Of a stretch of 64,000 bases of DNA, positions 7,907-34,800 are shown in pieces; positions within the stretch are counted from its first letter, which is position 1, and each line of letters opens with the position of its first letter. The translations under genes and the position numbers were made by a program. A model generated the notes under the pieces. That model searched no databases. It saw nothing but the letters and a program-made list of their open reading frames with translations, and was not told the DNA's origin. Source of the stretch: Schmidtea polychroa (taxonomy: Eukaryota); assembly GCA_044892525.1 (NCBI GenBank), contig CM097885.1, forward strand, positions 207,142,001-207,206,000. Direction: 5' to 3'.

Positions 7907-7985
<79 letters not shown>

Positions 7986-9350
7986 GAACTTTTTTTACCA
8001 ATTTCACTACTAATTTTTTTTCCATTGAATTTATTAAAAAGAGCTTGAAGACTATAAATCAGTAAATATATCAAAACATCGATATATTTACTGATTTATA
8101 GTCTTCAAGCACTTTTTAATAAATATATATAGTTTTTATTGTACTTCCTAGCCATGCCTTTCTTAATCACGCACTTGTATTGCACATGTCTTTCTTAATC
8201 ATAGTTTATAAAAATCAATAATAAACTTTGGTTAATACATTTATTTAATAATGTAAATTATGGAAGATTACACAAATCAATGAATATTGTTAAAAATGTT
8301 ATCAATAAAGTTCCATCTCTTGAGTGATAGATTATTTCCTCAATTGTGTAAAGAAAATGATGACGAATTCGGACGACTTATCTTACATACAGAAGTAAGA
8401 TGGATATCGAAAGGAAATTGTTTTAAAGGATTTTATGCAATATTTGATACAATTGTGATTTATCATTTAAATTGACTATTAGAATAACTTTTAAAATAAT
8501 TTTTAAATTGAATTTTTTAAATTGAAATTTTTAAAATTTAAAATTGAAAAATTAAACTAGCTTTTTAAAAAAAGTTTTATTAGTAAATAATTTTTAAATA
8601 AATATATTTTAAATATCAAATTTTAATAAATGATTTTGAAAATATTTTATTCAACGCTGAAAATTTGTTTGAAAATTATACAATATTTCATTAAATAAAT
8701 ACTTGGAATTATGTCGCTAACTTTTGAACCGGATTTAAAAAATAATTTAGAAGATGTGCTAATAATAATGTGCATTAATAATAATGTAAATAATAATGTA
8801 AATAATAATAATGTGCTAATATGATAATACGATTCAAAGACTTGCATGATAATACCGGATTGGATAATTAATCCATTTTTATCGGATGTAGAAAGTATCA
8901 GTTAAAATTTAAAAGAGCAGTTTATTAAGCTACAAAATGACTGAATCTAAAATAATATTTAATCAATGTGATTATGATGTTTTTTGGGTCAGTTTCGCTA
9001 TCAATACCCTCCTCAGTGGAAAGAGGTAAAATTACTCATCACAGCATTTAGTAGAAAAGGGTTTTAGTGCAGTAACGCATATATTAAAAAAATCACGACA
9101 CTAACACGTCTGATTTGAGAATCGCGAATTAATACATTACAATTTGCAATTGGGCATTTGATTTTCGGATGAAGATTTTTTTCCAAATAATCACTTACGC
9201 ATTTCCTATAAATAAATTGTAAAGATTATGAGTTTCAAAATAAATGATAAAACAATACCAACAAAATGAATGATTGCATTTCAAAATCGATAATTCATTT
9301 TGTTCTTTTTCGCTTTTGCAAATTAAGCATTCATTATAAATATTTATCAT
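2268..9350 (-). CDS. HOIL-1/RBCK1-like RBR E3 ubiquitin ligase, gene A (RING1-IBR-RING1-IBR-RING2), 8 exons, about 375 aa
   Basis: Hand-spliced exons, all GT-AG with the frame conserved: 9350-9259, 9205-9106, 7256-7017, 5801-5614, 2906-2807, 2761-2507, 2463-2320, 2276-2268 (1128 nt, no internal stop). Motifs: CLIC..CNHSFCWKC..CPIANC; IBR CILPQC..CHIC..CIKCKAPH..C; CMLC..CSHLFCRPC..CPKLYC; IBR CQTPNC..CRKC..CTECKAIH..C; RING2 MRCLDCKVLLEKVSGCNWVRCHNCSLELCWILKMRRWG. Human HOIL-1 has MRCPQC...KKDGCDWIRCTVCHTEICW...RWG. The last 9-nt exon is the least certain. Confidence 0.85.
3544..5012 (+). mobile_element. Internally deleted hAT transposon (Tip100/ZMYM1-like) in intron 4 of gene A
   Basis: Imperfect TIRs (CAGGCCCGTTCCTG; reverse complement of the right end is CAGTGTGTTCCTG). 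Exact 8-bp TSD AACAAGAA at 3536-3543 and 5013-5020. Frameshifted transposase C-terminus ending in a hAT dimerisation motif (FPNFSRALRIF..VTVASGERRFSKLKLIKTYLRSSMS) at about 4400-4655. Confidence 0.85.
5843..5955. repeat. Small dispersed foldback repeat, copy 1
   Basis: TATAAGAACTTTTTTTTCC..TTTCACCACTGATT..ATTTATTAAAAAGCTTGAAGAC with an internal hairpin. Related copies at 7981, at 13814 plus 29918, and near 63305. Confidence 0.6.
7912..7980. repeat. (TA)n microsatellite
   Basis: Uninterrupted TA dinucleotide run. Confidence 0.95.
7981..8125. repeat. Small dispersed foldback repeat, copy 2, with an approximately 45-bp-stem hairpin
   Basis: TTTATTAAAAAGAGCTTGAAGACTATAAATCAGTAAATATATC, a short loop, then GATATATTTACTGATTTATAGTCTTCAAGCACTTTTTAATAAA. 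Confidence 0.7.
8255..9100 (+). pseudogene. Decayed Buster/ZBED5-type hAT transposase fragment in intron 2 of gene A
   Basis: LCKENDDEFGRLILHTEVRWISKGNCF matches the hAT LHTEVRWLSRG motif. Downstream frames are broken by stops and frameshifts. Confidence 0.7.
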
Positions 9351-9790: not shown

Positions 9791-12700
9791 ATGGCATTAA
9801 AAAATTGTCTTGGATGTTCAGATGGTAAATTAGAAAGTGAATTGGTTAAGTTAAAATGTGTACATTCCTATTGCTGGTAAGTCTGAAATTTTATCTTTAT
9901 TACGATTACAAATCTTGTGTTCATATTAATTAATCTAGTAAATGTTTAAAATTATCAGTTTGTATTGTTATGGACAAAAATTCTACAACATCTATATCAG
10001 ATAAGTTAAAAATTAAATTTTAAATATTAAAAATTATAATTGTTTTTAACGCTAATGAACCTTAATAATTGAAGTCAGGTCCGTGGAAAATTATATTATG
10101 GTTTATTAATGGCAGTTGCAGAGGTTAAGCAAGATTGTTAGTTGTATTGATTGTGATATAAATAAAGGCAAGTAGTTTAAAACAAGTAATTGTTGTTAGA
10201 TAGTAGATGTGGATCTTACAGGAGGAGTGATTGGCGCAAACATTTTTCATACTTTTTTTTAATTTTGCAGCCCTTTATTACTACTTATAAAATAGATAAC
10301 TTTTAGTGTTATAAAATAATTATCGAAATAATAATTTCCACAATAGAAAGTTTGGTCTTTTAGACTAGTAAGACACTTACTGTCCTGATTGGTTGATTTA
10401 TAACCTAAGACCTAAAAATTCCCCCTCTACTTGATAACCTGTTTCCATTGCAGAAAATGATTCAAAAATACAAATTACAATACAAAATAAGTATAAATTT
10501 TATTGTATGTGGAAACCCCAAGTGATAAATGAGAATTAGTTTTTCCTCAGAATCGAATTAGCTGAAACAGAGCTTTTGATCATGTTTTTATGAAAAATGT
10601 CGCTTACCTAATTGTTTTGACTTGAGAGATGTTGTTTGCCATATTTAATTATTTTGTTTTTTGAAAATGAGTAGGAAAGAAACGCAGGGACACTAGTAGC
10701 TAGTTGCCAGTTTGATCAATGACAGGAAAGAGAAAATTTATAAAAAGTAGAACTAATCAATCACTAGTGTACCTGGCGTTTGGGATACCTACCATATAAA
10801 GCAGTGGTCTTCAAACTTCAAAAGCTCGCAGAACCCTTATGTGAAATGATGCATTACAATATAGATTTTATTTTTAAGTTTTTTTATGAAATTCTTGAAA
10901 TTTTTATTTATGTTTTTTATGAGAAATGAAAAATTTCTTTTAAATTATTGATTTTTTTTGGAACCCTGGGGTTCCGTAGAACACAGTTTGAAGACCATTG
11001 AAATGATTTTTAAAGTATAGATCAAAACTGTATTATAAAATTATTTTGAAAATGAATAAATTATTTTGTGTTGGGTCTTATTTGATTTTTTGAAACAGAG
11101 CATTAAGAGTCAACGTCTTTAGCGACTTTACGATGATAACTTAACAAATATATGAATATATTATAACTTAATTTCCTGATAATGTACCGTGCTATTCAAA
11201 AGTCTCCGTCTCTAAAACTAGAATAAAACAACAAAACACAATATAATTTATACTCACATATTTATACTTATTGACATTAATTATTATTCACTGATTAACA
11301 ATATGGGGGAAGAAGCTGGTGATGTTAAATTTTCGCTTGCGGATAGAGTGTTTATAGTCAGTCATGTAATAGTGTGCCAGAGTAGTGCTGAAGCTTGCCA
11401 AGGATTTCAACAACATTTCAATCGTGCACCAGAACAGCAGTGTAATACTGGAAACAGAAGTTTGAAGAAACTGGAAACTTATCCACTAGGTTCCGATTAG
11501 AAGACCGTCTAATGAAATCATGAAGGTGGTATATTTTGTAAAAGAGAATGATGGCACAAATCAACGAGAAACTGCACGAGTGTGCATGACTTCACAAACT
11601 TCTGTTCACAAATATCTCAAGGAAGAAAAAATAAAACCTTTCAAATATTCTTTTAATCAAATATTGGGAGAAGATAATCCCGATAGAAGGGTTGAATTAT
11701 GTTCTTGGATAGTCAACAAAAACAGTGTTAATTTCCATAGAAAAATTATTTTCTCAGATAAAGCTTAGTTTTATCTAAATGTTCTCGTACGAAAACACAA
11801 TCTTCTTTATTACGCTAAAGAGAATAAACATCAAAATTTTCCACAGTGGTGGATTGGTAGTAGAGGACTAAAGGAATGGCCACCAGGATCTCCAGACCTC
11901 ACGATATTGGACTTTTGGCTATGGAGCTACATCAAAGATCGTGTTTATGCCATCCATAACAATTATACAACGCTCAACGAACTTGAAGAAGCAATTTCAT
12001 ATGAATTAGTAAACATCAATTAAGAAGTCGTCTGTAAATGTTATTCAAGCTTCAGGAAACGATGCAATCTCACTTTGGAGCAAGATAGTGAACATTTTGA
12101 AAAGTTACTATGAAATTGCTTATTATTTACTGTTATTCTTTCTTTCTGTTATTGTGTTTTGTAGTGCATTAAAGTAACTCAATATATTTAGTTCGTTCTT
12201 GCTGTTGTTTTATTTTAGTTTTAGAAACGGGGACTTATGAATCGCACAGTATATTTTACAAATTTTCTTTTATCTTTAGGGAAACATTTACAGAGTTTCT
12301 ATCCCTTTAAAAGGCTTGCTGAAGAAAAAAGAACTCGCAGCAACTAATTTTTATAATTCTTTTTTCCATTTTAAGAATAAATAAAAACAATTATACATTA
12401 TGAATTTTTTTAGACATTTTATGTGTTATATTGCAGTAATTAATAAATAAACTGATATAAAGTGGACCCTAAGGTCAGAACGCCCCTTATATAAATTGGG
12501 GTTGTCGGTGAAATTAAATGTTACCAATTACTTTGTTTAACAACAATAACGAACTCAAAACGATATAAACTTTTATTGATTAACATAATTGATTTCCAAT
12601 TTACAGCGTTATCAATAATTTAATATTACAATAATGACTTGAGTTCTAATTGCATGGCACGTTTACAATATAACTTGGAATTCATAATCACTTGACTGCT

Positions 12701-15700
12701 GTTTCGGGTTTCGATGATCGGTAGATTCGATCTATTACTTTTTTAGCGTTAACTTGAATTTATTCGATAGCTTTAATTTATTGTAAATTGTATCTCCGAT
12801 AACTTCGTAATTCACGTTGGGTTTCGTTTTAATTCTATTTTCTTCTCTACCCTTTCTCCTTTATAATTTGTGTCTTTTGATTCAGGTTGTGTTGCCTTTT
12901 ATAGTCTTCAATCAAATGGCACTTGCTGATATTAACTTTCGTTTAGATTCCTTTTTCTCGTACATTCTCTTTGGTAATTTTAGTTCTTTTATTATCTTTA
13001 CGCCATCTTTCATCTTCCCCAGATGATCTCATCCCTTTATTTAGAACAAGTTTATTTGAATTCGTTATTGATTGCCTAGTGCAATCGTGCTGCGGTACCT
13101 GATTAGAGTGTTCAAATGTTGCATTGGGTTCTCGGGTTCATTTCAAATATAAGACTGGCACAGAATGTGCTTGTTAAATACCTATTTTTGTTTAAAAATT
13201 ATATATCATTATCTATTTTCGTAACTAACAACTATAATATGTTACAGGTTATGTTTGAATAAATACATCAGATCGAATATTAGTTGCAAAATCAAATGCC
13301 CATTTCAGTTGTGCTCTACCTTGATTAGAGATTCAGTAATAAGACAAGTAAAAATTTTTAATATTTTAGATTGAAATAAATTATACCCTTTACACTACTC
13401 AATTCTTACAATTACGTATAATGCTTTAACCTTCTACTTTATTGGGTAAAATTAGTCAAAAGTACAACTTTCCATTTTTTTTAGTTCTGGAAGTTATTAT
13501 CAAAATTTAATAACCTTTTCTAATAATTTATGTGAATTTAATGTAAATTAAATGATGTAATAGTTTGTTACAGTTGTTAAAATTACTACTTTTATTTAAT
13601 CACGTTAATATTAATAAATTTTAATAATTTAAAAGTATTTCAATCTCAAATATTTAAACAAGTTTTTAGAAGAGTATAGAATAATGTTAGTAAAGGTTCA
13701 AACCAAACAAGCATTTAATTTTCAAAGTTATTATGTTTGGAAAAATGAAAAATATGTTATTTTACAAAGTCATTTTGCATAGTTTTTAATGCAGTTAATT
13801 TTATTATATTTTTATAAGAACTTTTTTTTCCAATTTCACCACTGATTATTTTTCCATTGAATTTATTAGTAGGTAGTTAGTAGCGTACTGCAACAATTAC
13901 CCCCCCCGGGGGGGGGGGGGGTTGTTGCAACTTTTTTTTTGTTGCAACTTTTGATTATGCAATTTTTCAGACTATAGTGAGGGGGTCTCGATGGTCCTGG
14001 GATTTTCAATACAAAAAATTTTTTTCAATACAAAAATCCGACTACCAATAAAAAAGCATGGAATTTTCAGACTATAGTGAGGGGGTCTCGATGGTCCTGG
14101 GATTTTCAATACAAAAAATTTTTTTCAATACAAAAATCCGACTACCACTAAAAAAGCATGGAATTTTCAGACTATAGTGAGGGGGTCTCGATGGTCCTGG
14201 GATTTTCAATACAAATAAAATTTTTTCAATACAAAAACGATGGTCCTGGGATTTTCAATACAAAAAAATTTTTTCAATACAAAAATCCGACTACCAATAA
14301 AAAAGCATGGAATTTTCAGACTATAGTGAGGGGGTCTCGATGGTCCTGGGATTTTCAATACAAAAAGCTGGTCTACACTAAAAATGCATGGTAATTTAAG
14401 GTCTCAGGATATTTTCAATACAAAAAGCTGGTGTACACTAAAAAAGCCAAGGATTTTTCAGACTATAGTGAGGTGAGTCTCCTTGGTCCTGAGAAATAGG
14501 TGGTCTACACTAAAAACGTAGTAAATTTTTCAATTACAGTAAATTATGGTCCTAAAAAATTAAATTACAGTAAATTATGGTTCTAAAAAATTAAATTACA
14601 GTAAATTATGGCTCAAATTTTTAAATTACAGTAAATTATGGTTCTAAAAATTAAATTAAAGCAAATTATGGCTCAAATTTTTCAATTACAGTAAATAATG
14701 GTTCTAAAAATTAAATTAAAGTAAATTATGGCTCAAATTTTTCAATTACAGTAAATAATGGTTCTAAAATATTAAATTACAGTAAATAATGGTTCTAAAA
14801 TTTAATTTAAGTAAATTATGGTTCTAAAATATTAAATTACAGTAAATTATGGTCCAGATTTTTCAATTAAAGTAAATAATGGTCCAAATTTTAAAATTAA
14901 AGTAAATTATGGTTCTAAAAATTAAATTATAGTAAATTATGGCTCAAATTTTTAAATTACAGTAAATTATGGTCATAAAAAATTAAATTACAGTAAATTA
15001 TGGTCAAACATTTTAAATTAAAGTAAATAATGGTCCAAATTTTTCAAATACAGTAAATTATGGGTCTAAAAATTAAATTAAATAATGGTTCTAAAAATTA
15101 AATTAAAGTAAATTATGGTTCTAAAATATTAAATTACAGTAAATTATGGTCCTAAAAAATTAAATTACAGTAAATTATGGTTCTAAAAAATTAAATTACA
15201 GTAAATTATGGTCAAACATTTTAAATTAAAGTAAATAATTGTCCAAATTTTTCAAATACAGTAAATTATGGGTCTAAAAATTAAATTAAAGTAAATAATG
15301 GTTCTAAAAATTAAATTAAAGTAAATTATGGTTCTAAAATATTAAATTACAGTAAATTATGGTCCAGATTTTTCAATTAAAGTAAATAATGGTCCAAATT
15401 TTTAAATTAAAGTAAATTTAAGTTCTTAAAAATTAAATTACAGTAAATAATGGTCCAAATTTTTAAATTAAGTAATCAATGGTAAAAAATTTTAAATAAG
15501 TAAATTAAAGTAATAATTTTTAAATTAAGTAATCAATGGTAAAAAATTTTAAATAAGTAAATTAAAGTAAATTAAAGTAAGATTTTAAAATTTAATTACA
15601 AAATAATAGAAGGTGTTTGAGAATTGAAATTTTTTAATGGAAATTTTTATGAAATATTTTTCAATGATAATTTTAGATGGAAATTTTTAAGATAATTTTT

Positions 15701-18700
15701 AATGAAAATTTTTATGAAATATTTTTCAAAGACAAATTTTAATAATAATTCAACAACAAACCAACAACTTAGTACCAACAACCAGTAACTTACGAACATG
15801 TATTAACAACCAGATACCTACAACTAGTTACTAACAACTAGTTACATGATACTAAGTAAATACAACCACCTAACAAGTACTAACAACCAAAAACAAGCAA
15901 CCAACCAGGTACCAGTTACCAACTACTAAGTACCTACAACCAACTAGTTACCTGATACCAAGTACTTACAACTATATACTAACAACCAGTTACCTGATAC
16001 CTAGTACTTACAACTAGTTACTAACAACCAAAAACAAGCAACCAACTAGGTACCAAGTACTATTAACCAAAAACAACTAGCTAACAACTAGATACCAAGT
16101 ACCTACAACCACCTACCCATTAACTAGCTACCAAGTACTTACAACTAGCTACGACCTACCAAGTACTAACAACTAACAACAACCAGGTACTAGATACCAA
16201 GTACTAACAACCTACAACAACTAGGTACTAAGCATTATCAACCAAGTACCTAAAACCACCTAACAAGTACATACAACCAACATCAACCAGGTACCTACAA
16301 CTAGATACTAACAAACAGTTACCAAGTACCTACAACCACCTACCCATTAACTAGCTACAACCAGCTAACAACTAGCTACCAAGTACTAACAACCAACAAC
16401 CAGCTAACAACTAACTACCAGATACCTACTACTTACAACCAACAACTAAGTACTAACAACCAGCTAACAACTAGATACCAGGTACTAAGCATTATCAACC
16501 AAGTACTAACAACCAAGTACAAGATACCTAGTACTGTCAACTAGATACCAAACACTTACAACCAGATGACCACATGAAATTATTGGTTAAATATGAAAAT
16601 AAGGGTTATAATTAGTTGTTTAGTAAATTATGGTGTAAAATTAAGTAATAAAGCATAAATAGATAAATTAAGGATAAGTAAATTAAAGTTAAAAAATTAA
16701 ATTAAAGTTAATTAAGGTCCAAATTTTAAAAATAAGTAATCAATGTTCTAAAAAATTAAATTAAAGTTAAATAAGTAAATTAAAGTAATAATTTTTAAAG
16801 AATTTAATTAAAGTAATAATTTTTAAATAAGTAATGTAATAAGTAAATTAAAGTAAGATTTTTAAATTTATTATCAAAAGATTGAATAACCACCAACTTT
16901 TTTGAGAAATGTAATTTTTAATGAAAATTTAAATGGAAATTTTAATGGAATAATAATAATAATAATAATAATAAAAATAATAATAATAAAAATAATAATA
17001 ATAATAATTCAACAGTTACCAACAATCGGTTACTAAATATTTTTAACTAAGTACTAACAAATAAGTACTTTCAACATGATACCACGTACTAACTCTCAAA
17101 CAACCAGATACTTACAACGAACTACTAAATTTTCTTCATTGTATTTTATGAAATGCTTTTTAAATTAATTTTTTATACATCTTCTATAATAATTTTAATT
17201 ACAATCAGTAGAAAAACCTTTTCAAATTTAAAAAAAAATGTTGATTTTCATCAAAAAAACCACAACTCATCACCACGTGAAATTTAAAATAATTTAAATT
17301 ACAATGAAAGACTAATGAATTCTAATTTACAAAACATTCTTCTTTTAATTGATAACTTATTATTGCAAAGTAAAAATCGCATTCAATAAATACTTATTGT
17401 TGATCAGTTTTATTATATATACTCTTAGTCTATCCGACAGGATGTTTTGACTCCCTAAGGGTACAGGTCGTAAGAGTACTGGTCGTATGGGTATTAGTCG
17501 TAAGGGTACAGGTCGTAAAGGTACTGGTCGTAAAGGTACTAGTCGTAGGGGTATTGGTAACACTCAACCACAACCTACCCATTAACTAGCTACTAAGTAC
17601 TAACCACTAGGTTTCAAACAACAACTACTAACAACCACCATCAAAACCCATCGAGAAATTAACAAATATCAACCTACAACTATATAACAACAATCAGTAA
17701 ACAACACTGTACCAACTACCAAATACAAAATATTCTTCATCGCATACACTATTTTCTTATCAAAATCTAAAAAGTCAACCAACTACTTACAACCAACAAC
17801 TATGTACTAACAAATTGATCTTTAAAAGCAAATACTCTTCACTTGAAAAATTGGATGAAAAAATTATTTGAACTCAAGGCATCAATAACTAGGTAAAAAT
17901 TGATTAAATTATTGTAAAAAATTTAAATTATTCGAAATAAATATCATAAAAATTTAATTAATGGACAAGAAAAAAATTCTAATCATCCAGTAAATAAAAT
18001 AAAATACTGATCATTCAAGTTGAATCAACTAAGTTAATAAATTAATAAAATTTTAAATAAAATCTAGTAGATAATTGATTTAGATTGAATAAATTAATTG
18101 AAATAAAATTAATTTTAATTATTTTTGTAAAAGTAATACATGTACTCAAATTGATTGACTGATTTCTCAATATATTCAAAAAATCAGTATAAATTCATTA
18201 CAAATATTGGATGAAAAATTAATTGAACTCAAGACATCAATAACTTGGTAAAAATTGATTAAATAATTGTAAAAATTTAAAATTTTCAAAATAAATGTCA
18301 TAAAAATGTAATTAATGGACAAGAAAGAACTTTAAATTCTAGTCATTGATCATTCAAGTTAATATGAATCAACTAAGATAATAAATTACTAAGAATTTTG
18401 AAATAAGATCTAGTAGATCTATTTATATTGAATAAATTAATTGAAATAAAATTAATTTTAATTATTTTTTTAAAAGTAATACATGTACTCAAATTGATTG
18501 ACTGATTTCTCAATATATTCAAAAAATCAGTATAAATTCATTACAATTATCAAAGTCAGCAATCTACAATAAAAATAATTATCATTAAATTCCAAAAGAG
18601 ACTAGATAACTAATGATAACATCTAACAAACCAGTAAATTCATTCAAATGACAATAATTGGTATATCCAAGTGAATTCTCCAATAAAATCATCTAAAAAG

Positions 18701-21700
18701 CATCATTTTCCCCCCTAAATATATCAATATTTAAAGATTGGTATTTTAATGATAAATACTTGTTAAAGATCATATATTCTCCTCAAACTAATAAGATTCC
18801 TTAAAATCCCTTAAATGACTATATTTCAACCCTTAATTCATATTATTACAAATAATTCATTAAAATCATCTAAAAAGCATCATTTCCCCTAAATATATCA
18901 ATATTTAAAGATTGATATTTTAATGATAAATTCCCGTAAAGGATCATATATTCCCCTCAGACTAATAAGATTCCTTAAAATCCCCTTTAAATGACTATAA
19001 TTCTAACTTTAATTCGTATTATCACGAATATTTCCCTATAAAACATGTAAAATCATTAACCCTAAATAATTTATAAAATCTAATGATAAAACTGGTTATA
19101 ATTAATTTTTTGTTAATCACTGTACTCGATATTTTAAATAAATATTACTACAATATAACTGACTAGGTCCCATTGAAAGATTTATCCATTCAATGAAATA
19201 TATTTCTTCAAATGATCATTTTTACCAATATTCAACCGATTTAATTACTAATTAAAATCAGGATTTCTTCCAATAAAGATCAATTTTCTTTAGTCGATGT
19301 TTTAAGTCCATATTTATCAACTTTTGTCATTCTCCCTCTTAAATAAAGATAAAAATAATTTAAAGTTGATATCAATCCAAATTATCTCTAAAGATTTCAT
19401 TGTCAAAACCAAGTAAATCGGTCATTAACACTACTTAATAAAACCCTGGATAATTAAAAGAGAATTTAATAAAACATTGTTCTAAAACATAAATCTAAAT
19501 TAATATACAATGAATTAATCACAACCTAATAAAACGATATAATTTCACATTATTAGTGATTCATAACTGACTAATTGCAATTTCCCTTAAAACATTGATA
19601 TTTTGCCAACATTACCCATGTAAATATTCAAAAGATTCCCATCGAAACCCATCCCTCATTAAAAGCAACCGACTATATCTTTCTTAAAATGAAATATTTC
19701 CCATATTAACCGACTATATCCCCATTAAAAAATCATATATTCCCACCTTATCTGATCTCTCATTAAATCTAACCGACTATATCCCTTTAAAAATCATATA
19801 TTCCCATCTTAACCCATCCCTCATAAAATTTAACCGACAATATCCCATCTTATCCGATCTCTCAGCAAATAATTCTACCCTTTTAAACATCTATCCGATT
19901 ATATCCCTTATTTTCCCTAAAGATTCCGCCCACTTGAGCCCTTTAATATATATCAATCCTCTTAAAATCCTCAGAGAAATTCAAAAATATGACTTTTAAT
20001 TAATTGTTATAGAACCAGACAAATAATAAGAGCCCATTAAAAGATCAAAATTCACTAAATTTTCTACAAATATTTACCATCAAATACTGGAGATGATATA
20101 TATTGTTTGATCATAATTCTTCATCGATTCAGCCAATCATTTTCAAGCAATAACAGCAAACTAAATTTCTGTATATCCTACAATAATTATCAAGTAAATT
20201 TAAAGTCATTGATAAAGTTGGTTTCTTAGCTTATGTTTTTTAAAGTGCATCAATGTGTAAATATTCTTAGAAAATTATTGAAAAATTATTTAGTCAAATA
20301 CATTACAAAGTTATCATCAAAAATCACTTAATTATTAACCTAATTGTCAATGAAATTAATTTTTATTTAAAAACTATTCAATAAAATACAACTAATTATC
20401 AAGAAATTAATTAAATTTATCAATTAAATTTATCAGTCAACATGAAATTCTTAGAAAATTATTCAATATCCTCATAAAAATTTATCATATCACTTCATTA
20501 TTGTAAAATCTCTAATTATTAACCTCATTGAAAATAATTTTTATTTAAAATTAAAAAAACAAGTCAATAAAAATACATCCAATTATCAAGAAATTAATTA
20601 AATTTATCTTAGAATTAGCATTAAATTATTAAATATTCATTCAATAAACATGAAATTTGCAAAAATGTTAGAAATCCATGAAAATGATAGATATCTACAA
20701 AAATTACGGATATTCACAAAAAAGTACGGAAATTCATGAAAATAATAGAAAATTACAAAAAAATGATAGAAATTCATAAAAATGATAGAAATTTACTTGA
20801 ATAAAACCATCAACTCTAAAAATTATCAATACCTTAAACAACAAATTTGTCTAAATAATCATTCAAATAAAAACATTAAATACCTTTACGACTAATACCC
20901 TTGCGACATGTTGAATGTGAGTAGTACCCTTGTGAGCAATACCCATAGGGGGACAGAATATTTTGTCGGATAAACTCAGAGTATATATTAATTAACTCAT
21001 TTATCATTGAATTAGTCAAATTATCGTAAATTTCGATAAAAATTCTAAAGTGGTAAGCAATGTAAAGAGAAATATTCTTTAAATTTTGATAAAATTAACA
21101 ATGAAGGTGGTAAGAATCTTCATTAAAGTGAGGAAATTATTCATTACTCGATTCAAATGGGTGAAAATAATTGGTAGAATAATTCATTAATGGAGGTAGA
21201 TAATGAGAAGTAGTATAGATAAGATGAAGGTTGATAAGAATGGATGTATTGCAACTATTTTCTAAAAATTAACACTTTAATAAAAAAAACTTTTAAAACA
21301 AATATTTGTGGGGATGTTTTAAGTGAATAATTAATCAAAATCGGCGGAATATAAGTAGAAAATCGGGGTGGGGGTTATAGGCGAATAATTAATGGAAAAT
21401 CGGGGGTAATATAGGGATTAAATAGTGGAGAATAATAGTGAATATAAGTGAGAAGGATATGTAATTTAAACTATTTTATTACGTAACAAGCCGCGACTAG
21501 TTTATTACATAACAAGCTGTGAATGGTATTTTACCAACATTTTACTAAATTTTTAAAGTATGTAATTTAATTTTAATTATATTTTAAAATTGTATATATT
21601 TTGAATATCATTCTATTGTTTAATTTCAATAATAAGTTAAAAAAATCTATAATAATTAATAAATTAATATCTTGTTAACATTTATTTAAAAATTTAAAAA

Positions 21701-24700
21701 ACTTTACTTAAAATTAGTGAAGTATTTAATTTTAATTGTATTTTATAAGACATATATTTGAGTATTAACTTATTTTGATTGAAGTATCACATTTAATATT
21801 GTGATGATTGTTTTCTAAATCGAAATATTTAGTGTAAAATAGTAAATTTAATAATAAATAGCTACAATATTAAAGGTCTTTTTTTAAAAAAAATATTTAC
21901 TTTCTATTACCTAATTCCATCATTAAGTTTAAAAAGTCTATAACTGTTAATAATTCAATTTCTTATTCACATTTTCTAATAAAACTTATATTTTTAAATA
22001 TAGTGTAAAGAATTTAATTTTAATTGTATTTTATAAGTCATTTATTTGAATATTTATCTTATTTTTATTGAAAGGAGTAATATAATTCATATTATGATAT
22101 TCGTTTCGAAATATTTAGTGTAGAATCGTAAATTTAATAATATATAGCTATTATTGCAAGTACTTATACAACAAAACTTTTTTATTTCTAATGTTTTATT
22201 CCATAAATAAGTTTTAAAGTATATAACTGGTAATAAATTAATTTCTTATTTAAATTTATTTAAAAAAGCTTTACTTATAAAATTTATATTTTCGATAGCT
22301 TATATTTGAATATTAACTTCTATTGATTGAAAAGGGTAATTGATTTAGAAATTATTTAGTGTAAATCAAAACATTTAAATTATTAAGGTATTAAAGTACC
22401 TATTCAAAAATTAAAATAAAAAGACCTAATCAATAATTTTCAATAAAATACTATTCACAGCTTGTTATGTAATAAACTAGTCACGGCTTGTTATGTAATA
22501 AACTAGTCGCGGCTTGTTACGTAATAAAATAGTTTAAATTACATATCCTTCTCACTTATATTCACTATTATTCTCCACTATTTAATCCCTATATTACCCC
22601 CGATTTTCCATTTTTTATTCGCCTATAACCCCCACCCCGATTTTCTACTTATATTCCGCCGATTTTGATTAATTATTCACTTAAAACATCCCCACAAATA
22701 TTTGTTTTAAAAGTTTTTTTTATTAAAGTGTTAATTTTTAGAAAATAGTTGCAATACATCCATTCTTATCAACCTTCATCTTATCTATACTACTTCTCAT
22801 TATCTACCTCCATTAATGAATTATTCTACCAATTATTTTCACCCATTTGAATCGAGTAATGAATAATTTCCTCACTTTAATGAAGATTCTTACCACCTTC
22901 ATTGTTAATTTTATCAAAGTTTAAAGAATATTTCTCCTTTCATTGCTTACCACTTTAGATTTTTTATCGAAATTTACGATAATTTGACTGATTCAATGAA
23001 GAATGAGTTAATTAATATATACTCTGAGTTTATCCGACAAAATATTCTGTCCCCCTATGGGTATTGCTCACAAGGGTACTACTCACATTCAACATGTCGC
23101 AAGGGTATTAGTCGTAAAGGTATTTAATGTTTTTATTTGAATGATTATTTAGGCAAATTTGATGTTTAAGGCATTGATAATTTTTAGAGTTGATGGTTTT
23201 AGTAAATATTCAAGTAAATTTCTATCATTTTTGTGAATTTTTATCGTTTTTATGAATTTCTATCATTTTTGTGGATTTCCATTATTTTCATGAATTTCCG
23301 TAATTTTTGTGAATATCTGTAATTTAATGCTAATTCTAAGGTAAATTTAATTAATTTCTTGATAATTGAATGTATTTTTATTGAATTGTTTTTTAATTTT
23401 AAATAAAAATTTATTTTTAATGAGGTTAATAATTAAAGTTTGTACAATAATCAAGTGGTAGGATAAATTTTTATGAGGATATTGAATAATTTTCTAAGAA
23501 TTTCATGTTGACTGATAAATTTAATTGATAAATTTAATTAATTTCTTGATAATTAGTTGTATTTTATTGATTAGTTTTTAAATAAAAATTAATTTCATTG
23601 ACAATTAGGTTAATAATTAAGTGATAGAATAAATTTTTGATGATAACTTTGTAATATATTTGAATAAATAATTTTTTCAATAATTTTCTAAGAATATTTA
23701 CATATTGATGATCTTTAAAAACATAAGCTAAGAAACCAGTTAACTTTATCAGGGACTTTAAATTTACGTGATAATTATTGTAGGATATAAAGAAATTTAG
23801 TTTGCTGTTATTGCTTGAAAATGATTGGCTGAATCGATGAAGAATTATGATCAATCAATATATATCATCTCCAGTATTTGATGGTAAATATTTGTAGAAA
23901 ATATTGATTTTTGATCTTTTAGTGAACTCTTACTACATAGCTACTAAATTATTTCAATGGAAGAATATTTGGTGTCTATAACAATTAAGTCATATTTTTG
24001 AAGTTCTTTAAAGATTTTAAGAGGATTAATATATTTTAAAGGGCTCAAGTGGGTAGAATTGAATGATATATTCGGTTAGATGTTTAAAGGGGTAGAAATA
24101 TTTGGTGAGAGATCGGTTAAGATGGGATATTGTTGGTTAAATTTAATGAGGGATGGGTTAAGATGGGAATATATGATCTTTTGAGGGGATATAGTCGGTT
24201 AGATTTAATGAGAGATCAGATAAGGTGGGAATATATCATTGTAAGGGAGATATAGTCGATTGAATTTAATGAAGGATGGGTTAAGATGGGAATATAGTCG
24301 GTTAAATTTAATGAGACATGGGTTAAGATGGGAATATATGATTTTTTTAATGGTGATGTTGGTAAAATATCATTGTTTTAAGGGAAATGTCAATTAGTCA
24401 GTTATGTATCAATAATAATTATATCGTTTTATTAGGTTGTGATTAATTCATTGTATATTAATTTAGATTTATGTTTTAGAACAATGTTCTATTAAGTAAG
24501 GATAATGATCGATTTACTTGGTTTTGACGATGAAAACTTTACAGATAAATGGGATTGATATCAACTTTAAATTATTTTTATCTTTATTTAGACGGACAAC
24601 GACAAAAGTTGACCATTTGAAGAAATATATTTTATTGAATGGATAAATTTAATCTTTCAATGGGACCTAGTCAGTTATATTTATTTTAAATTTCAAGTAC

Positions 24701-26765
24701 AGTGATTTACAAAAATTTACAGTGATTAACAAAAATTTAATTATAACTGGTTTTATCAATAGTGAAACATGTATGATAATAGGAATTAAAGTTAGAATTA
24801 TAGTCATTTAAAGGGGATTTTAAGCAATCTTATTAGTCTGAGGTAAATATATAACCTTTTAAGGATATTTATCGATAAAATACTAATCTTTAAAGATAGT
24901 TATTTCAGGGAAATTTGATGCTTTTTAGATGATTTTAGTGAAATATTTGTAATAATATGGATTAAGGGTAGAAATATAGTCATTTAAGAGATTTTAAGGA
25001 ATCTTGTTAGTTTGAGGTGAATATATAGTCTTTTAAGGGTACTTATCATTAAAATATCAAACTTTAAAGATAGTGTTATTTCAATGAAATTTGATGCTTT
25101 TTAGATGATATTTGTAATAATATGAATTAAGGATAGAAATATAGTCATTTAAGGGGATTTTAAGGAATCTTGTTAGTTTGAGGTGAATATATGATCTTTA
25201 ACAAGTACTTATCGATAAGATACTAATCTTAAAAGATATAGATATTTCAGGGAAAATGATTCTTTTTAGATGATTTTATTGGAGAATTCACTTGGATATA
25301 CCAATTATTTAAATAAATTTACTGGTTTATTAGATGTTATCATTAGTTATCAGTCTCTTTTGGAATTTTATGATAATTATTTTTATGGTAGATTGCTGAC
25401 TTTGATAATTGTAATGAATTTATACTGATTTTTTTTTGAATATATTGAGAAATCAGTCAATCAATTTGAGTACATGTATTACTTTTAAAAAAATACTTAA
25501 AATTAATTTTATTTCAATTAATTTATTCAATCTAAATCAATTATCTACTAGATCTTATCTTATTAATTTATTATCTTAGTTGATTCAACTTGAATGATCA
25601 ATGTTTTTTTTTATTTACTTGATGACTAGAATTTTTTCCTGTCCATTAATTAAATTTTTATGATATTTATTTCGAATATTTTAAATTTTTACAATAATTT
25701 AATCAATTTTTACCTAGTTATTGATGCCTTGAGTTCAATTAATTTTCCATCTAATTTTTCAAGTGATGAGTATTTTTCTTTTAAAGATCAATTTGTTAGT
25801 ACATAGTTGTTGGTTCTAGGTAGTTGGTTGTTAGTACTTGGTACTTGGTAGTTGGTATCTGATTGACTTTTTAGATTTTGATAAGAAGATATTGTATGTG
25901 ATGAAGAATATTTTGTATTTAATTGCTATTATTTTTATGTGTGGTTAGTTGATTGTTGGTACTTGGTATCTTGTTGTAAGTACTTGGTAGCAGGTATCTG
26001 GTTGTAAGTATCTAGTTGTAGGTTGATATTTGTTAATTTCTCGATGGGTTTTGATGGTGGTTGTTAGTACATGGTTGTAAGTGTTTAGTATTTAGTTGTT
26101 TGAAACCTAGTGGTTAGTACATGGTAGCTAATTAATGAGTAGGTGGGGATTGAGAGTGATCAATACCCCTACGACTAGTACCTTTACGACCAGTACCCTT
26201 ACGACTAATACCCTTACGACCAGTACCCTTACGACCAGTACCCTTACGACCTGTACCCTTAGGGGGGTCAAAACATCCTGTCGGATAAACTCAGAGTATA
26301 TATAATAAAACCGATCAATAATAAGTATTTATTGAATGCGATTTTTACATTGCAATAATAAGTCAGTAGTTATCATTTAAAAGAAGAATGTTTTGTAAAT
26401 TAGAATTCATTAGTCTTTCATTGTAATTAAAATTATTTTGAATTCCACGTGGTGTTAGAGTTGACAATTATTCATTTTTTGATGAAAATCAACATTTTTG
26501 TTAAATTTGAAAAGGTTTTTCTACTGATTGTAATTAAACATATTTTTGAAGACAGATAAAAAATTAATTTAAAAAACAATTCATAAAATACAATGAAGAA
26601 GATTTAGTTGGTTGTTAGTACTTGGTTGTTTTTACTTGGTTGATTGAGATTTAGTTAGTATGTGGTATCATGTTGTAAGTATTTATTTATTTGTTAGCAC
26701 CTAGTTAAAAATACATGATCGTTGTTGGAATCTGATTGTTGAATTATTATTTTTATTATTATTAA

Positions 26766-26821
<56 letters not shown>

Positions 26822-29800
26822 CATTAAAATTTCCATTTAAATTTTCATTATAAATTACATTTCTCAAAAAAGTTGGTGGTTATTCAATCTTTTGATAATA
26901 AATTTAAAAATCTTACTTTAATTTACTTATTTAATTTAAAATTTGAACCATTGGATACTTAATTTTAAATTTTGAACCTTAATTTACTTATTTAAAATTT
27001 TTAACTTTAATTTACCTAATTATTCTTTATTTCTTAATTTTACACCATAATTTACTTAACAACTAAATATAATCCTTATTTTCATATTTAACCAATAATT
27101 TCATGTGGTCATCTGGTTGTAAGTGTTTGGTATCTAGTTGACAGTGCTTAGTACTAGGTAAGTTATTTGGTTGTTAGTACTTGGTTGTATGTACTTGGTA
27201 TCTAGTTGTTAGTAACTAGTTGTAGGTAATTAATGCTTAGTAGTTGGTAACTGGTTGTTAGTACTTGGTATCTAGTACCTAGTTAGCTGGTTGTAGCTAG
27301 TTAATGGGTAGGTTGGTTGTTAGTACTTAGTATTTAGTTGGTTGATAATGCTTAGTACCTGGTTGTTGTTGGTTGTTAGTACTTGGTATCTAGTACCTAG
27401 TTGGTTGGTTGTTAGTACTTAGTATTTAGTTGGTTGATAATGCTTAGTACCTGGTTGTTGTTGGTTGTTAGTACTTGGTATCTAGTACCTAGTTGGTTGG
27501 TTGTTTTTGGTTGATAGTACTTGGTATCTAGTTGTAAGTATTTGGTATCAGGTAACTGGTTGTTAGTATCTAGTTGTAGGTTGTAGGTACTTAGTAGTTA
27601 GTTGATGATGCTTAGTACCTGGTTGATGTTGGTTGTAAGTACTTGGTATATAGTACCTAGTTGGTTGGTTGTTAGTAACTAGTTGTAAGTACTTGGTAGC
27701 AGGTAACTGGTTGTTAGTATCTAGTTGTAGGTTGTAGGTACTTAGTAGTTAGTTGATGATGCTTAGTACCTGGTTGATGTTGGTTGTAAGTACTTGGTAT
27801 ATAGTACCTAGTTGGTTGGTTGTTAGTACTTAGTATTTAGTTGGTTGATAATGCTTAGTACCTGGTTGTTGTTGGTTGTTAGTACTTGGTATCTAGTACC
27901 TAGTTGGTTGGTTGTTAGTAACTAGTTGTAAGTACTTGGTAGCAGGTAACTGGTTGTTAGTATCTAGTTGTAGGTTGTAGGTACTTAGTAGTTAGTTGAT
28001 GATGCTTAGTACCTGGTTGATGTTGGTTGTAAGTACTTGGTATCTAGTTGATAGCTGGTTGTTTTTGGTTGTAGGTACTTAGTAGTTGGTTAATAATGCT
28101 TAGTAACTGGTTGTTGACGGTTGAGTGCTTGGTAGGTGGTAGCTAGTTGGTTGATTGTTTTTGGTTGTTAGTACTTGGTATCAGGTAACTGGTTGTTAGT
28201 ATCTAGTTGTAGGTATCTGGTTGATGTTGGTTGTAGGTACTTAGTAGTTGGTAATTAATGCTTAGTACCTGGTTGTTGTTGGTTGTTAGTACTTGTTAGG
28301 TGGTAGTTAGTTGTTAGCTGGTTGTTGTCGGTTGTTAGTACTTGGCAGGTGGTAGTTAGTTGTTAGTACTTGGTAGGTGGTTGTAGGTTGTAAGTAGTTG
28401 GTATCAGGTTGTTAGTAACTAGTTGTAGGTATCTGGTTGGTAATACATGTTCGTAAGTTACTGGTTGTTGGTACTAAGTTATTGGTTTTGTTGTTGAATT
28501 ATTATTAAAATTTGTCTTTGAAAAATATTTCATAAAAATTTTCATTAAAAATTATCTTAAAAATTTCCATCTAAAATTATCATTGAAAAATATTTCATAA
28601 AAATTTCCATTAAAAATTACCATTGAAAAATAATTCATTAAAAATTAACTTAAAAAATATTTCATAAAAATTTTCATTAAAAAATTTCAATTCTCAAACA
28701 CCTTCTATTATTTCAACTTTTTGTTAATAAATTTTAAAATCTTACTTTAATTTACTTTAATTTACTTATTTAAAAATTATTACTTTAATTTACTTATTTA
28801 AAATTTTTTACCATTGATTACTTAATTTAAAAATTTGGACCTTAATTAACTTTAATTTAATTTTTAGAACCTTAATTTACTTTAATTTAAAAATTTGGAC
28901 CATTATTTACTTTAATTTAATTTTTAAGAACCATAATTTACTGTAATTCAATTTTTAGGACCATAATTTACTGTAATTTGATTTTTTAGGACCATAATTT
29001 ACTGTAATTGAAAAATTTACCACGTTTTTAGTGTAGACCACCTATTTCTCAGGACCAAGGAGACTCACCTCACTATAGTCTAAAAAATCCTTGGCTTTTT
29101 TAGTGTAGACCAGCTTTTTGTATTGAAAATATCCTGAGACCTTAAATTACCATGCTTTTTTAGTGTAGACCAGCTTTTTGTATTGAAAATATCCTGAGAC
29201 CTTAAATTACCACGTTTTTTTAGTGTAGACCACCTATTTCTCAGGACCAAGGAGACTCACCTCACTATAGTCTAAAAAATCCTTGGCTTTTTTAGTGTAG
29301 ACCAGCTTTTTGTATTGAAAATATCCTGAGACCTTAAATTACCATGCTTTTTTAGTGTAGACCAGCTTTTTGTATTGAAAATATCCTGAGACCTTAAATT
29401 ACTACGTTTTTTTAGTGTAGACCACCTATTTCCCCAGGACCATCGTTTTATTGTATTGAAAAAATTTTATTTGTATTGAAAATCCCAGGACCATCGAGAC
29501 CCCCTCACTATAGTCTGAAAATTCCATGCTTTTTTAGTGGTAGTCGGATTTTTGTATTGAAAAAAATTTTTTGTATTGAAAATCCCAGGACCATCGAGAC
29601 CCCCTCACTATAGTCTGAAAATTCCATGCTTTTTTAGTGGTAGTCGGATTTTTGTATTGAAAAAAATTTTTTGTATTGAAAATCCCAGGACCATCGAGAC
29701 CCCCTCACTATAGTCTGAAAATTCCATGCTTTTTTAGTGGTAGTCGGATTTTTGTATTGAAAAAAATTTTTTGTATTGAAAATCCCAGGACCATCGAGAC

Positions 29801-31806
29801 CCCCTCACTATAGTCTGAAAAATTGCATAATCAAAAGTTGCAACAAAAAAAAAGTTGCAACAACCCCCCCCCCCCCCGGGGGGGGTAATTGTTGCAGTAC
29901 GCTACTAACTACCTACTTTTATTAAAAAGAGAGCTTAAAGACTATAAATCAGTAATATATCGATGTTTTTTTATACTCACGAATTTTCGGAACTGCAATT
30001 TCATTTTTATATTTTTAGTTGAATTTGTAAATTGTTCTTACAATTTCGACAAATTTTCCTGTGACAACAATCATGTAATAATTACGTCATTTTACTTAAA
30101 CATTTACTAATAATTTGTCGCTTCTTAATTGAAAAAATGAGTTGCAATTATTTGGACTTTATTTCCAAGCAGAACAGTTCGGGAGTATTTTCTATACAAA
30201 ATCATAAGCTTCGAAAGCATAAATGAAAAAAATTTAAAAGTAATTACTTAACTAACTTAACGACCGCCTTATATAATAAGTTTCGTCCAATCAGGACTAA
30301 GTGGTGTTGTTTTTTGTCTATTTTTCTTTATTTCCTATATTTTAATTGTTTTTATTAGGTATTATTTTGTTTTATTTTGCTACCTTATTGTTTTATTTAT
30401 TTTCTATATTTTGGTATAATTTTGCCGATTTTCCGTTAATCTTTTTGTGTGTAATGACCTATTTCTATTTTTTTCTAATTTTTATTAATATTTTATGTCC
30501 TTATTTTGTGTTTTTTCCATATTTATGTTTTGTTCTTTTAATTCTTATTTTTATTAAATTATTTTTTTTCTTTTTGTCTGTTGTCTAGGGTTAATATCTT
30601 ATTTCTGTATACTTAGTTCTGTTTCCTGTGATTCTTATTTTTAACTGTTTTCATCTTATTTTATTATTTATTTAAATTTTCTTATTAATTCTTTCAAATC
30701 CTTATTTTTAGTTTGTTTTTACCTAGTTTATTTAATGTTAAATTTATTTTGTTTATTCGTTTCTACTTTCGACTCTTTCCTATATTCATTTCAGTCCAAC
30801 ACCACTTTCCAATTAAGCCAAACACATATGACGTAACAAAGAAATTTTAACGAACAGAGACATGACTCATCATTATACTGAACAAAGACATTTTACGGAA
30901 TAAAGACATGACTCATCATATTTTGAATTTCCAAAGGTTAAATAAAGTCAGACCTTCAAACAAAAGTATCATTCGAAAGATCTTGAAGATCTCTATCCAA
31001 TGGTTATATTCTCGAAGGTCTAAGGTGTAAAACCTTCAAAGGGTCAAAAACATTCNNNNNNNNNNNNNNNNNNNNNNNNNNNNNNNNNNNNNNNNNNNNN
31101 NNNNNNNNNNNNNNNNNNNNNNNNNNNNNNNNNNNNNNNNNNNNNNNNNNNNNNNNNNNNNNNNNNNNNNNNNNNNNNNNNNNNNNNNNNNNGAATATGA
31201 TGGTCATACCCTCGAAAGTTTATGGTAGGTCATTGATAATAATATTGATAATAATAATAATAATAACTCCCGCGCGCGAATTAATAACTTTAAATCTAGT
31301 AATGATATCTCATTAAAAAGGTCTTGCACTGGGCTTTAAAATAAGACATCTATCAATAAAATTGGTTGATAGGAACAATAACTTTTGGTTTGCCAAAAAG
31401 TAGATCACCCCAGAAACAAAGACATAATTTTTAAAAATATTTTTACGATGAGTCATTGTCTTTGTTCTAAAAATAGATGTCTTTGTTCTAAAAGGATGAG
31501 TTGTCGGTTATTATGTTTTAAAAATTTGAACCCCTTGAAGGTTTTTTTAGTTTCAGGTTCCTTCATAAACCTTTGAAAGTATGACCATGATACTTACATA
31601 AAAAATACCTTTTGTTTGATATATATTGAAATTTTTGAACCTTGGACCCTTCAACCTTCGAACTCATCATCAAAAGTCTTTTTGAATGATATATAACTTG
31701 TAAGGTTTGAAAAAACATTTAAGTTTGAACACCTTTGAAGGTTATTGACCGACCATAAACTTTCGAGGGTATGACCATCATATTCGCCTTTCAAATACCT
31801 TTTGTT

Positions 31807-31888
<82 letters not shown>

Positions 31889-34800
31889 AAGTTTGAAAAA
31901 ATTCGAATGTTTTTGACCCTTTGAAGGTTTTACACCTTAGACCTTCGAGAGTATAACCATTGGATAGAGATCTTCAAGATCTTAAGAATGATACCTTTGT
32001 TTGAACGTCTGACTTTATTTAACCTTTGGAAATTCAAAACATGATGAGTCATATTTCTTTGTTCGATATGATGAGTCTTATGTCTTTGTTTGTTAAAATG
32101 TCTTTATTACGTCATTTAAAACGATGAGTCATATGTCTTTGATATGTCATTTGTTCCGTGAAAATGTATTTGTTTAAAAATGGCCTAAAATCGACTTTGA
32201 CAATAAACCGTCCTCAAAATGACATTGATCCTAAAATTAGACCTTAGGTTTCGTTTACCGTGACCTTAAAATTTCTATGACTTTAAGTGGACCTTAAGAA
32301 AAATGCATTAGTTACGTCATATGTCTTTGTTCCTTGGTCCACATGTTACCCTACTAATTTGGAAAATATTTCCTAGGTTAGCATTCCAATTGTGCTTCAT
32401 TTAAAGAGATTATTACTGTTTATCATTTATAATTGTTAAATTATTATTAAAAATTATTTTCACTCTATTAAAAAATTCTTTCGTAATTTTTGCAAGAGAG
32501 GGAATAGTGGGTAAGTGTCTTAATTATTTTTTTTAATCTTCATAATATATATTTAATTATTTAATAAATATAAAATTTAAAGTAATTTACATTATTTTGA
32601 AATAATTTTTCATTAAAATCCACATTTAATTCTAATTAGAGAATAATTACTAAATAATTTAAAATATGAAATTTTCAGAATTTGATGAAAAATCCGTACA
32701 ATAATTTGAAAGCAGTAATTACTCATTTTTTGTATATAAATACTGCCAATACACATAAAATTTTATATTTTGTACCGGGATGTATGAATATTTTTGATTA
32801 TGGATTGTTAGATATTTCTTTTATATTATCGCGATTATTTTTTATTGAGTATAATAATTGTTTCTTTTCTAAAATTAAATGCTTGTTTTAAGAAAATGTA
32901 TTTTGTGAATGTTATGTCGTTAGTTTGGAATATTTTATTACACTGATCATTATGCTATGTTTGTAATTTATTTATTAACGTTTTTATTCAGGTGCTCTCT
33001 GGTGATGATATCGCAAAATATGAAAATGCTGTTTTGTGTAAAACTAATATATTTTTTTGTTTATTGAAAGAATGTAATAATCCTGTATCATATACGGATG
33101 CGAATATTCAGTATGAGTGTATGAAGTGTTCCCTTATCAATTGCATCTCATGTAAAGCACCACATAACCTTATTAAGTGTGCAGATTTTAAATCTAAAAA
33201 TAAATCACAACAAACCGCCATTTCTGAGGTTTATTTATCGGTTATTTATCATTTATTATTATTCATTTCTAATAGACTGAATTTAAAAATGCCGGTAGAA
33301 TTTTAGAAACCCGCGTGGCAAATAAAAATAGAGAATCACTTTTAGAATACGAAGAAATCAATCTATTGAAGAACGATGAAATATTTACCTGTTTATGTGA
33401 TACACAATTCGGGAAAGGAAAAGGCATTAAATTGCAAAATTGTTTTCATAATGTTTGCTCGTAAGATTTTTTGGTCATTTGAAATTTATTATATAAAAAC
33501 TCAATGTCTAATAGTGTATGTATATATGTATAAAATATTTTTTAAAAAATAATAAATAAAATAACTAAGAACCGTAACAATTTAACATGGAAAAAATTTT
33601 CACCGTTTTTCACTGACACCAAATTCACGAGCTGCTGCACAATGGTTGTTAGCTATTAAAGTTTAAATGCAACATATGATGTCCACTTCTGTTTAATGGC
33701 CCTAAAAATGCATTTTACTGACTTCGATAAGCAAAATAAATAAACTGATTCAAGCAATTCAATTGGTATAAAGCAGGGTTTCGAACCCAAACCGAACCTG
33801 AACCTGAACCCAGCAAAAATTCGGTTCAGGTTCAATTTTAATAGTCATTATTTTATACATAGATAATAAATAGAGATTGTGTAAAATTGTTATTAAGGAT
33901 TTGTGATACTCATAACTATATAAAATTATAATATAAATAAGTCATTCATTCATAATAAATTACATAAACTATAAACTATAAATAATTTATTTATACAGAA
34001 ATTATAAATTATTTTAGGGCCTATTTATAATAGAAACATTTATGGTAAGTATAAATTAACACCATTTTTATTCAGTTACTATTTTTTTAAACTAGCTTAA
34101 TTTAAATTTGTTTTAGCCTGTAGATTTTGGGAAATCCAGTAAAAATTTTTTTTCAATATAATTTTATCAAAGATCAGTCTACATGTAGCAAGTGCTCTTT
34201 TTTTATGAAAGGTAAGTATACTGCAAATATAGGTCGCCATATCAAACGAAAACATCCTGATGAACATCGAACTATTACTGAAAGGATGAATAGTCAACCA
34301 TCTACATCTGAAACCATTAAAACCTTTAAACGAAAGATGAAAACTTAGTTTCCATTGAAAATTATTGTAATTTAATCAAAATTAATATGCCATTAAAATT
34401 TTTCATTGATGCCTGCGTTAAATTAGTTACAGTTAATAGACGACCGTTTACAATTTTCAGTGATTCTGGGATGAGCGATATTATAGTACCGATAATGAAG
34501 AAACTCAAATTGACTGTAAATTCAGAAAACATCAAAGATCTGGTAAATAATAAGGCAAATGAAGTGAAAAATATAATTAAAACCGAGATTAAAGAAAATT
34601 AATATCCATAAAAATCGACTCAGCATCCTGGCTTGGTAGAAGCGTAATTGGTACAAATGCCCAGTATATTAGCAATGGAAAAATTAATTTGAGAACATTG
34701 GCAATGTATTAAGTCAATGACCAGAAAACACCAAATTACATTAAAAATATAATAGTCAAAGTGATCGAATCTTATGGCATAAAATCAACTCAAATTTACT

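Follow-up and report, generated by a model that had tools for sequence, protein, structure and literature searches.

Foldback-like transposons share a structural plan. The Drosophila FB and root-knot nematode Tm1 elements, which are related to Mutator/Phantom, consist almost entirely of two long terminal inverted repeats (TIRs) composed of tandem sub-repeats in variable copy number, and many of their copies are without a transposase; they are flanked by a target-site duplication (TSD) of 9 bp (8-10 bp), and the two TIRs of one Tm1 element are on average 93.15% identical (PMC3169594). Galileo, a member of the P superfamily in Drosophila, has long, internally repetitive TIRs of up to ~1.26 kb and a 7-bp TSD (PMC3573991). 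Here we describe a 16-kb palindrome found in a stretch of the Schmidtea polychroa genome of 64,000 nucleotides (assembly GCA_044892525.1, contig CM097885.1, positions 207,142,001 to 207,206,000, forward strand; hereafter the window, numbered from its first letter). The palindrome occupies the second intron of a gene, named here gene B, which is predicted to encode a HOIL-1/RBCK1-like RING-between-RING (RBR) E3 ubiquitin ligase. We consider it highly probable that the palindrome is a non-autonomous Foldback-like DNA transposon inserted in an intron of an intact gene. The insertion is large but of an ordinary kind.

Three traits place the element in this structural class: the TIRs account for most of its length, they are composed of tandem sub-repeats whose number varies, and a TSD flanks the whole. 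In these respects the element resembles FB and Tm1, and the identity of its arms (92.9%) is close to the Tm1 average (93.15%). Unlike the 9-bp TSD of FB and Tm1, the duplication here is 6 or at most 7 bp, the comparison being one of structure alone, and the arms of 7.5 kb are much longer than the FB/Tm1 and Galileo arms described in PMC3169594 and PMC3573991. As regards Galileo, the TIRs of at most ~1.26 kb contrast with 7.5 kb here, while the 7-bp TSD is one of the two readings of our duplication; no P-type transposase is present in the element, which has no open reading frame (ORF) longer than 96 aa and whose 96-aa ORF matches no Pfam family. An element of the Galileo/P type with a 7-bp TSD would be compatible with the data. 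TSDs of 6-7 bp occur in other superfamilies too.

Two further systems are relevant if the intron is transcribed. Transcribed inverted repeats in Drosophila are a source of Dicer-2-dependent small interfering RNAs (siRNAs) (PMC10317233), and long-range pairing within introns is known to influence splicing, as complementary segments can draw splice sites together (PMC2724269, PMC8052449). Like the hairpin RNA (hpRNA) loci, the palindrome of gene B is an inverted repeat which, if transcribed, could fold as one RNA into a long duplex. However, the arms of hpRNA loci reproduce the sequence of a target gene, and small-RNA data define such loci, whereas the arms here are satellite-like and known from DNA alone. 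The known cases of long-range intronic pairing involve short conserved boxes; in gene B the pairing segments come with a transposon insertion and show no sign of selection for pairing.

The palindrome and its insertion site

Self-comparison of the window placed the inverted repeat at 13868-29917 (16,050 bp), entirely within intron 2 of gene B (13348-32991). The initial annotation had reported a 16-kb palindrome, and its existence is confirmed at these positions; what had been missed is its transposon nature and the target-site duplication. The left arm (13868-21534; 7,667 bp) begins with AGTAGGTAGTTAGTAGCGTACTGCAAC and consists of mirrored tandem arrays, the central spacer or loop (21535-22468; 934 bp) contains an internal repeat of ~290 bp and has no coding capacity, and the right arm (22469-29917; 7,449 bp) is the reverse complement of the left one. 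When one arm was globally aligned with the reverse complement of the other, 6,893 columns aligned with 92.9% identity and the longest perfect run was 304 nt; identity reaches 98-99% at the outer ends and close to the centre.

Both arms are mosaics of at least 10 tandem arrays with units of 100, 30, 13, 42-60 (up to 151), 3, 15, ~170 (174), 61 and 19 bp. Every array is mirrored in the opposite arm, often in an unequal number of copies (the 30-bp unit is present in ~35 versus ~9 copies), and the arrays together account for ~40% of the palindrome (37% and 48% of the two arms). Since the satellite units are A/C-only in one arm and G/T-only in the other, the GC skews are extreme and opposite (-0.30 to -0.38 at 16000-20000, +0.35 to +0.44 at 24000-28000); in the sense RNA of intron 2, C and A prevail in the left arm, G and U in the right. 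The palindrome is free of N. It contains no ORF of 97 aa or more, self-BLAST of the window revealed no similarity of the arms to any exon, and no Rfam or tRNA matches were obtained anywhere in the window. The window as a whole is AT-rich and crowded with transposons, with a GC content of 22-37% in 2-kb segments, mostly below 31%.

The evidence for insertion lies at the borders. The two ends of the palindrome (13868 and 29917) are identical for 27 nt, a string that occurs nowhere else in the window, and each is bordered by TTTATT, on the left at 13862-13867 and on the right, adjoining the right arm, at 29918-29923. The TSD is thus 6 bp long with perfect TIR ends, or 7 bp (TTTATTA) if the terminal A is counted as target sequence. 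Past TTTATT the right flank reads TTTATTAAAAAGAGAGCTTAAAGACTATAAATCAGTAA, which is the terminus of a palindromic miniature inverted-repeat transposable element (MITE) of ~100 bp (29918-30023), so the palindrome was inserted at the edge of this MITE. Family copies of the MITE are found at 8029-8124 and 63306-63358; a relaxed MITE BLAST gave mostly AT-rich noise, and only matches above 89% identity were used.

The corresponding empty site is preserved in gene A, the inverted paralogue of gene B. Its intron 2 carries tttttccattgaaTTTATTaaaaagag uninterrupted at 8010-8036 on the + strand, and tttttccattgaaTTTATTaaaaagag continues unbroken into agactataaatcagtaa. The string tttttccattgaaTTTATTaaaaagagcttgaagactataaatcagtaa is likewise continuous in the gene A intron; its counterpart in intron 2 of gene B is interrupted by the palindrome, which has TTTATT at either border. 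The pair of an empty and a filled site, taken together with the TSD, argues that the palindrome was inserted by transposition and did not arise through local duplication or as an assembly artefact.

The MITE copies of gene A (8010-8124) and gene B (13842-13867 plus 29918-30023) also have 13 extra flanking bases in common, tttttccattgaa. This shared flank is on the same strand of the window although the two genes are mutually inverted, and the third copy (63306) is without it. The shared flank could be due to target preference, to an element that is longer and asymmetric, or to an ancient rearrangement.

Intron 2 of gene B includes a second, small foldback of ~1.3 kb (30828-32115), with arms at 30828-31055 plus 31193-31232 and at 31746-31785 plus 31905-32115. 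The earlier statement that this intron contains the whole 16-kb foldback and a second one thus holds, both having been located within 13348-32991. The left arm of this foldback is broken by an assembly gap of 137 N (31056-31192), which lies ~1.8 kb before exon 3. Since the gap is intronic, it does not touch the reading frame of gene B, and the figure of 19,644 bp for the intron should be taken as approximate. Both gap flanks map in order and orientation to the opposite arm, where the matching interval is 119 bp against the 137 N, which supports continuity across the gap. The palindromic heptamer TGAGTCA/TGACTCA, known as a motif of the AP-1/GCN4 type, occurs in repeated sub-units of the small foldback (30840-31000 and 32040-32330), for example in gatgagtcatatgtctttg.

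Gene B and its inverted paralogue

Gene B lies on the + strand and comprises 8 exons, with GT-AG borders at every intron (7/7) and a coding sequence of 1,215 nt that translates into 404 aa with zero internal stops. Exon 1 (9791-9876) begins with ATG, encodes the first half of an N-terminal RING and ends in phase 2 before the donor GTAAGT. Exon 2 (13248-13347; 100 nt) ends with ...LIRDSVIRQ at the donor GTAAAA and is followed by intron 2, which measures 19,644 bp as written, the 137 N included. Exon 3 (32992-33228), preceded by the acceptor ...TTATTCAG, begins with VLSGDD... and encodes the IBR of the N-terminal module. The linker and the first half of a second RING1 are encoded by exon 4 (33276-33460), where C-L-C replaces C-x2-C, and the second half of this RING1 by exon 5 (36814-36907). 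Exon 6 (36960-37205) encodes an IBR that matches the HOIL-1 IBR, exon 7 (37248-37391) a RING2 with a catalytic-type cysteine in GCNW, and exon 8 (39627-39749) the zinc-binding tail GRGDTSGGCRC..., terminated by TGA at 39747-39749. Two statements of the initial annotation are therefore upheld: exon 2 (13347) and exon 3 (32992) join in frame as in gene A, both borders being in phase 0 and the junction homologous, and the spliced frame is open over all 404 codons with GT-AG throughout.

The placement of the terminal exons deserves a comment. A position of exon 1 directly before exon 2 (12950-13247) was rejected, as the frames there are stop-ridden and cysteine-poor and a scan for RING motifs placed the exon at 9791-9876. 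Had exon 1 been sought only at 12950-13247, gene B would have counted as a pseudogene. The scan for the first half of a RING gave no other match on the + strand before exon 3, and thus exons 1-2 of gene B have no rival as the partner of exon 3 onward. It was also considered that genes A and B end right after RING2 (...RWGPNVFIHFF...); this was rejected for gene B when the motif scan located the last exon at 39627.

The sequence of the predicted product identifies it as an RBR E3 ubiquitin ligase of the HOIL-1/RBCK1 type. A Pfam search found IBR and IBR_1 domains in the exons of gene B, exons 6 and 7 (IBR and RING2) match the structures of human HOIL-1/RBCK1 (7yui_B, E=4.5e-7; 8bvl_A, E=5.9e-12), and the last exon supplies the HOIL-1-type tail GRGDTSGGCRC...C...C. 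As in HOIL-1/RBCK1, RING1-IBR-RING2 is accompanied by the pattern ...GC(N/D)W..C..C..E(L/I)CW...RWGP..GD(T)SGGCRC.... Unlike HOIL-1, the scanned exons of gene B contain neither UBL nor NZF, and the 404-aa model opens directly with a RING; genes A and B and the relatives P0003 and P0009 have instead an extra N-terminal RING-IBR module. A further difference from HOIL-1 is the C-x-C form of the first zinc knuckle in the second RING1 of gene B: at 33400-33410 in exon 4 the knuckle is C-L-C and one codon short, while gene A and 5/5 relatives covering the segment have C-x2-C. In the alignment with gene A and the relatives, gene B keeps all other aligned zinc ligands, the GCNW cysteine and the GGCRC tail.

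Among protein databases, queries with the exon 3 peptide, P0004 and P0001 returned no transcript-derived gene B protein. P0004, a database protein of 693 aa related to genes A and B, has its best named match in Planococcus citri (43%). When the exon 3 peptide was compared with 1.84 billion cluster representatives, one close match was obtained, P0001 (152 aa, UniParc; 82% identical over exon 3), and it has the same exon 2/3 junction as gene B (...GVIRQ|VIFGDD...). P0001 lacks C-x-H-x2-C of RING1, and it stops early with an odd C-terminus that corresponds to the +1 frame of gene B exon 4. Because of the skipped RING1 part and this frame-shifted ending, P0001 looks like an imperfect computed gene model from a related species.

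Gene A (2320-9350, - strand) serves as the comparator. Its exons are at 9350-9259, 9205-9106, 7256-7017, 5801-5614, 2906-2807, 2761-2507 and 2463-2320, and the last exon falls outside the window. The junction homologous to the exon 2/3 junction of gene B runs from ...SQIRR|GTTAGT (9106) to CAG|ILADD (7256); exon phases are identical in the two genes and exon 2 has 100 nt in both, whereas intron 2 is 1,849 bp long in gene A and 19,644 bp in gene B. In this head-to-head arrangement the start codons, at 9350 (-) and 9791 (+), are ~440 bp apart, and a bidirectional promoter region is probably shared. Gene A would therefore offer an internal reference for the expression of gene B.

The initial annotation had suggested the ratio of nonsynonymous (dN) to synonymous (dS) divergence as a check on gene B. 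Run as gene A versus gene B, the comparison gave 40.8% identity, a dN of 0.57 and a dS of ~3. These values point to an old duplication with both copies long under purifying selection; dS is saturated, so they are uninformative on recent constraint.

Predicted folding of the intron and the state of gene B

The RNA of the palindrome is predicted to fold strongly. The central 3,351 nt have a minimum free energy of -1820.6 kcal/mol, compared with -561 to -601 (around -573) in five dinucleotide shuffles, and 1,206 predicted pairs of this fold cross the centre. For the outer 500 nt of both arms the predicted duplex has -811 kcal/mol. The earlier estimate of ~7.5 kb of double-stranded RNA (dsRNA) is right insofar as a very long imperfect duplex is possible if the RNA is made; the figure itself was overstated, as ~6.9 kb are alignable at 93% and unequal arrays interrupt the pairing. 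That the fold brings the splice sites much closer is borne out by calculation. With the palindrome folded, the path between the splice sites of gene B shortens from 19.6 kb to ~3.6 kb (520 + 3,074 nt), and with the second foldback folded too it is ~2.3 kb, close to the 1.85 kb of the gene A intron.

The following history agrees best with these data. A MITE of ~100 bp was already present in intron 2 of gene B when a Foldback-like element without transposase landed at its edge by cut-and-paste, duplicating 6 bp (perhaps 7). The element is separated from the donor by 520 bp and from the acceptor by 3.07 kb, so that the coding sequence and splice sites of gene B are untouched. Gene B would still be transcribed, the intron RNA snapping back first at the inner arms (738 nt, 97% matched), and the intron would be excised as a long imperfect hairpin that might be diced or edited, as happens with other intronic inverted repeats. 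We propose such read-through of the element and processing of the hairpin only tentatively, as a course of events that is possible. A bolder version holds that gene B is expressed and that its intron 2 is a giant host-driven hairpin precursor: the ~7-kb imperfect dsRNA would be diced to siRNAs against the Foldback family and the satellite arrays, or heavily edited from adenosine to inosine, and the snap-back would enable splicing over 19.6 kb. This version we regard as improbable. The ideas on dsRNA and splicing seem reasonable in themselves and are not new.

Other origins of the palindrome have to be weighed against transposition. One would argue that it was made in place, by inverted duplication of a local satellite through template switching at a fork or through a hairpin-capped break, given that the arms are mostly tandem arrays, which are prone to rearrangement, and that a single copy was seen in the window and in the metagenome scans. 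However, such a process would not yield both a precise empty site and a TSD; moreover, the sharp identical ends stand within a direct duplication, and the interrupted sequence is a small repeat that is intact elsewhere. We thus hold an origin in place to be very improbable. An artefact of assembly is barely credible, be it a chimeric foldback read, a mis-join or a scaffold join at the N gap that wrongly linked exons 1-2 to exons 3-8. Long-read assemblers can indeed produce false inverted duplications, but these are near-identical, whereas the arms here differ by 7% and in array copy number, enclose a unique 0.93-kb spacer and are free of N. A gap is present in intron 2, yet the other arm of the small foldback matches both gap flanks in the right order, and the exon order of gene B, being the same as in gene A, speaks against a wrong join.

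Several observations nevertheless weigh against a mobile element that sits in an intact gene and is read through. Self-BLAST of the window, a search of it with the 27-nt terminus and exact-pattern scans of metagenome contigs revealed no further copy of the element, so that its mobility has to be judged solely from the TSD and the empty site, and the TSD is short, 6 bp of A/T only. The remaining points would suit a gene B that is dead or dying, in which the insertion, or silencing of the element by heterochromatin or small RNAs, blocks transcription or splicing and the open frame reflects recency. Intron 2 is ten times longer than that of gene A. Its sense strand has many poly(A)-like and donor-like motifs (58 AATAAA and 15 GTAAGT), which makes premature termination or cryptic splicing possible; the density of AATAAA is not above that of the gene A intron. 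The C-L-C knuckle, short of one codon, could be a tolerated change, or it could mark the onset of relaxed constraint or decay. The protein-database searches gave no transcript-derived protein, and P0001, the sole close database model of gene B, is truncated, although its defects resemble errors of gene modelling. On the other hand, 404 stop-free codons in DNA of 27% GC, GT-AG retained in 7/7 introns, and the presence of all remaining zinc ligands and of the catalytic-type cysteine are not what a dead gene would lead one to expect. Since the arms are only 93% alike, a very young insertion is also improbable, unless they had diverged on arrival. A dead or dying gene B is therefore, in our judgment, rather unlikely, and the insertion of a Foldback-like transposon in an intron of an intact gene is the reading that we prefer.

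Neighbouring elements and significance

The window contains several other features. In the last intron of gene B (intron 7) a RACK1 fragment is found at 38299-38556 (-): it is intronless, covers residues ~202-276 (PDB 9ru8_Sg, E=2.6e-39) and runs into an in-frame stop, beyond which the tail is decayed. By its sequence it is a fragment of a processed pseudogene, antisense to gene B. Downstream of the gene, a pogo-like transposase ORF of 438 aa with DDE_1 and HTH_Tnp_Tc5 domains occupies 42055-43371 (-), and a ZBED5/hAT-like transposase ORF of 648 aa occupies 44137-46083 (+). The best named matches of the latter are from aphids (56-57%), and a DNA copy ~96% identical to it is present in a Logan contig of run SRR21069090. 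The pogo-like and hAT-like elements may have been active recently. Inverted copies of another element, with a zinc-finger ORF MGNPVKIFFQYNFIKDQSTCSKCSFFMKGKYTANIGRHIKRKHPDEH..., lie at 33981-35100 (intron 4 of gene B) and at 62266-62803 and are 90% identical over ~455-480 bp. Two further assembly gaps are at 50991-51272 and 56017-56183.

In principle the locus brings nothing new, as Foldback-like elements, dsRNA from intronic inverted repeats and structure-assisted splicing are all established. Its arms are nevertheless unusually long for a Foldback-like transposon, 7.5 kb versus the Galileo maximum of ~1.26 kb (PMC3573991), and the element illustrates how satellite arrays are carried around within the arms of a transposon. 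If gene B is expressed, it would form a natural paired test with the insertion-free gene A, ~440 bp away on the opposite strand, and the pair would show the effect of a very long intronic inverted repeat on transcription, splicing, small RNAs and editing.

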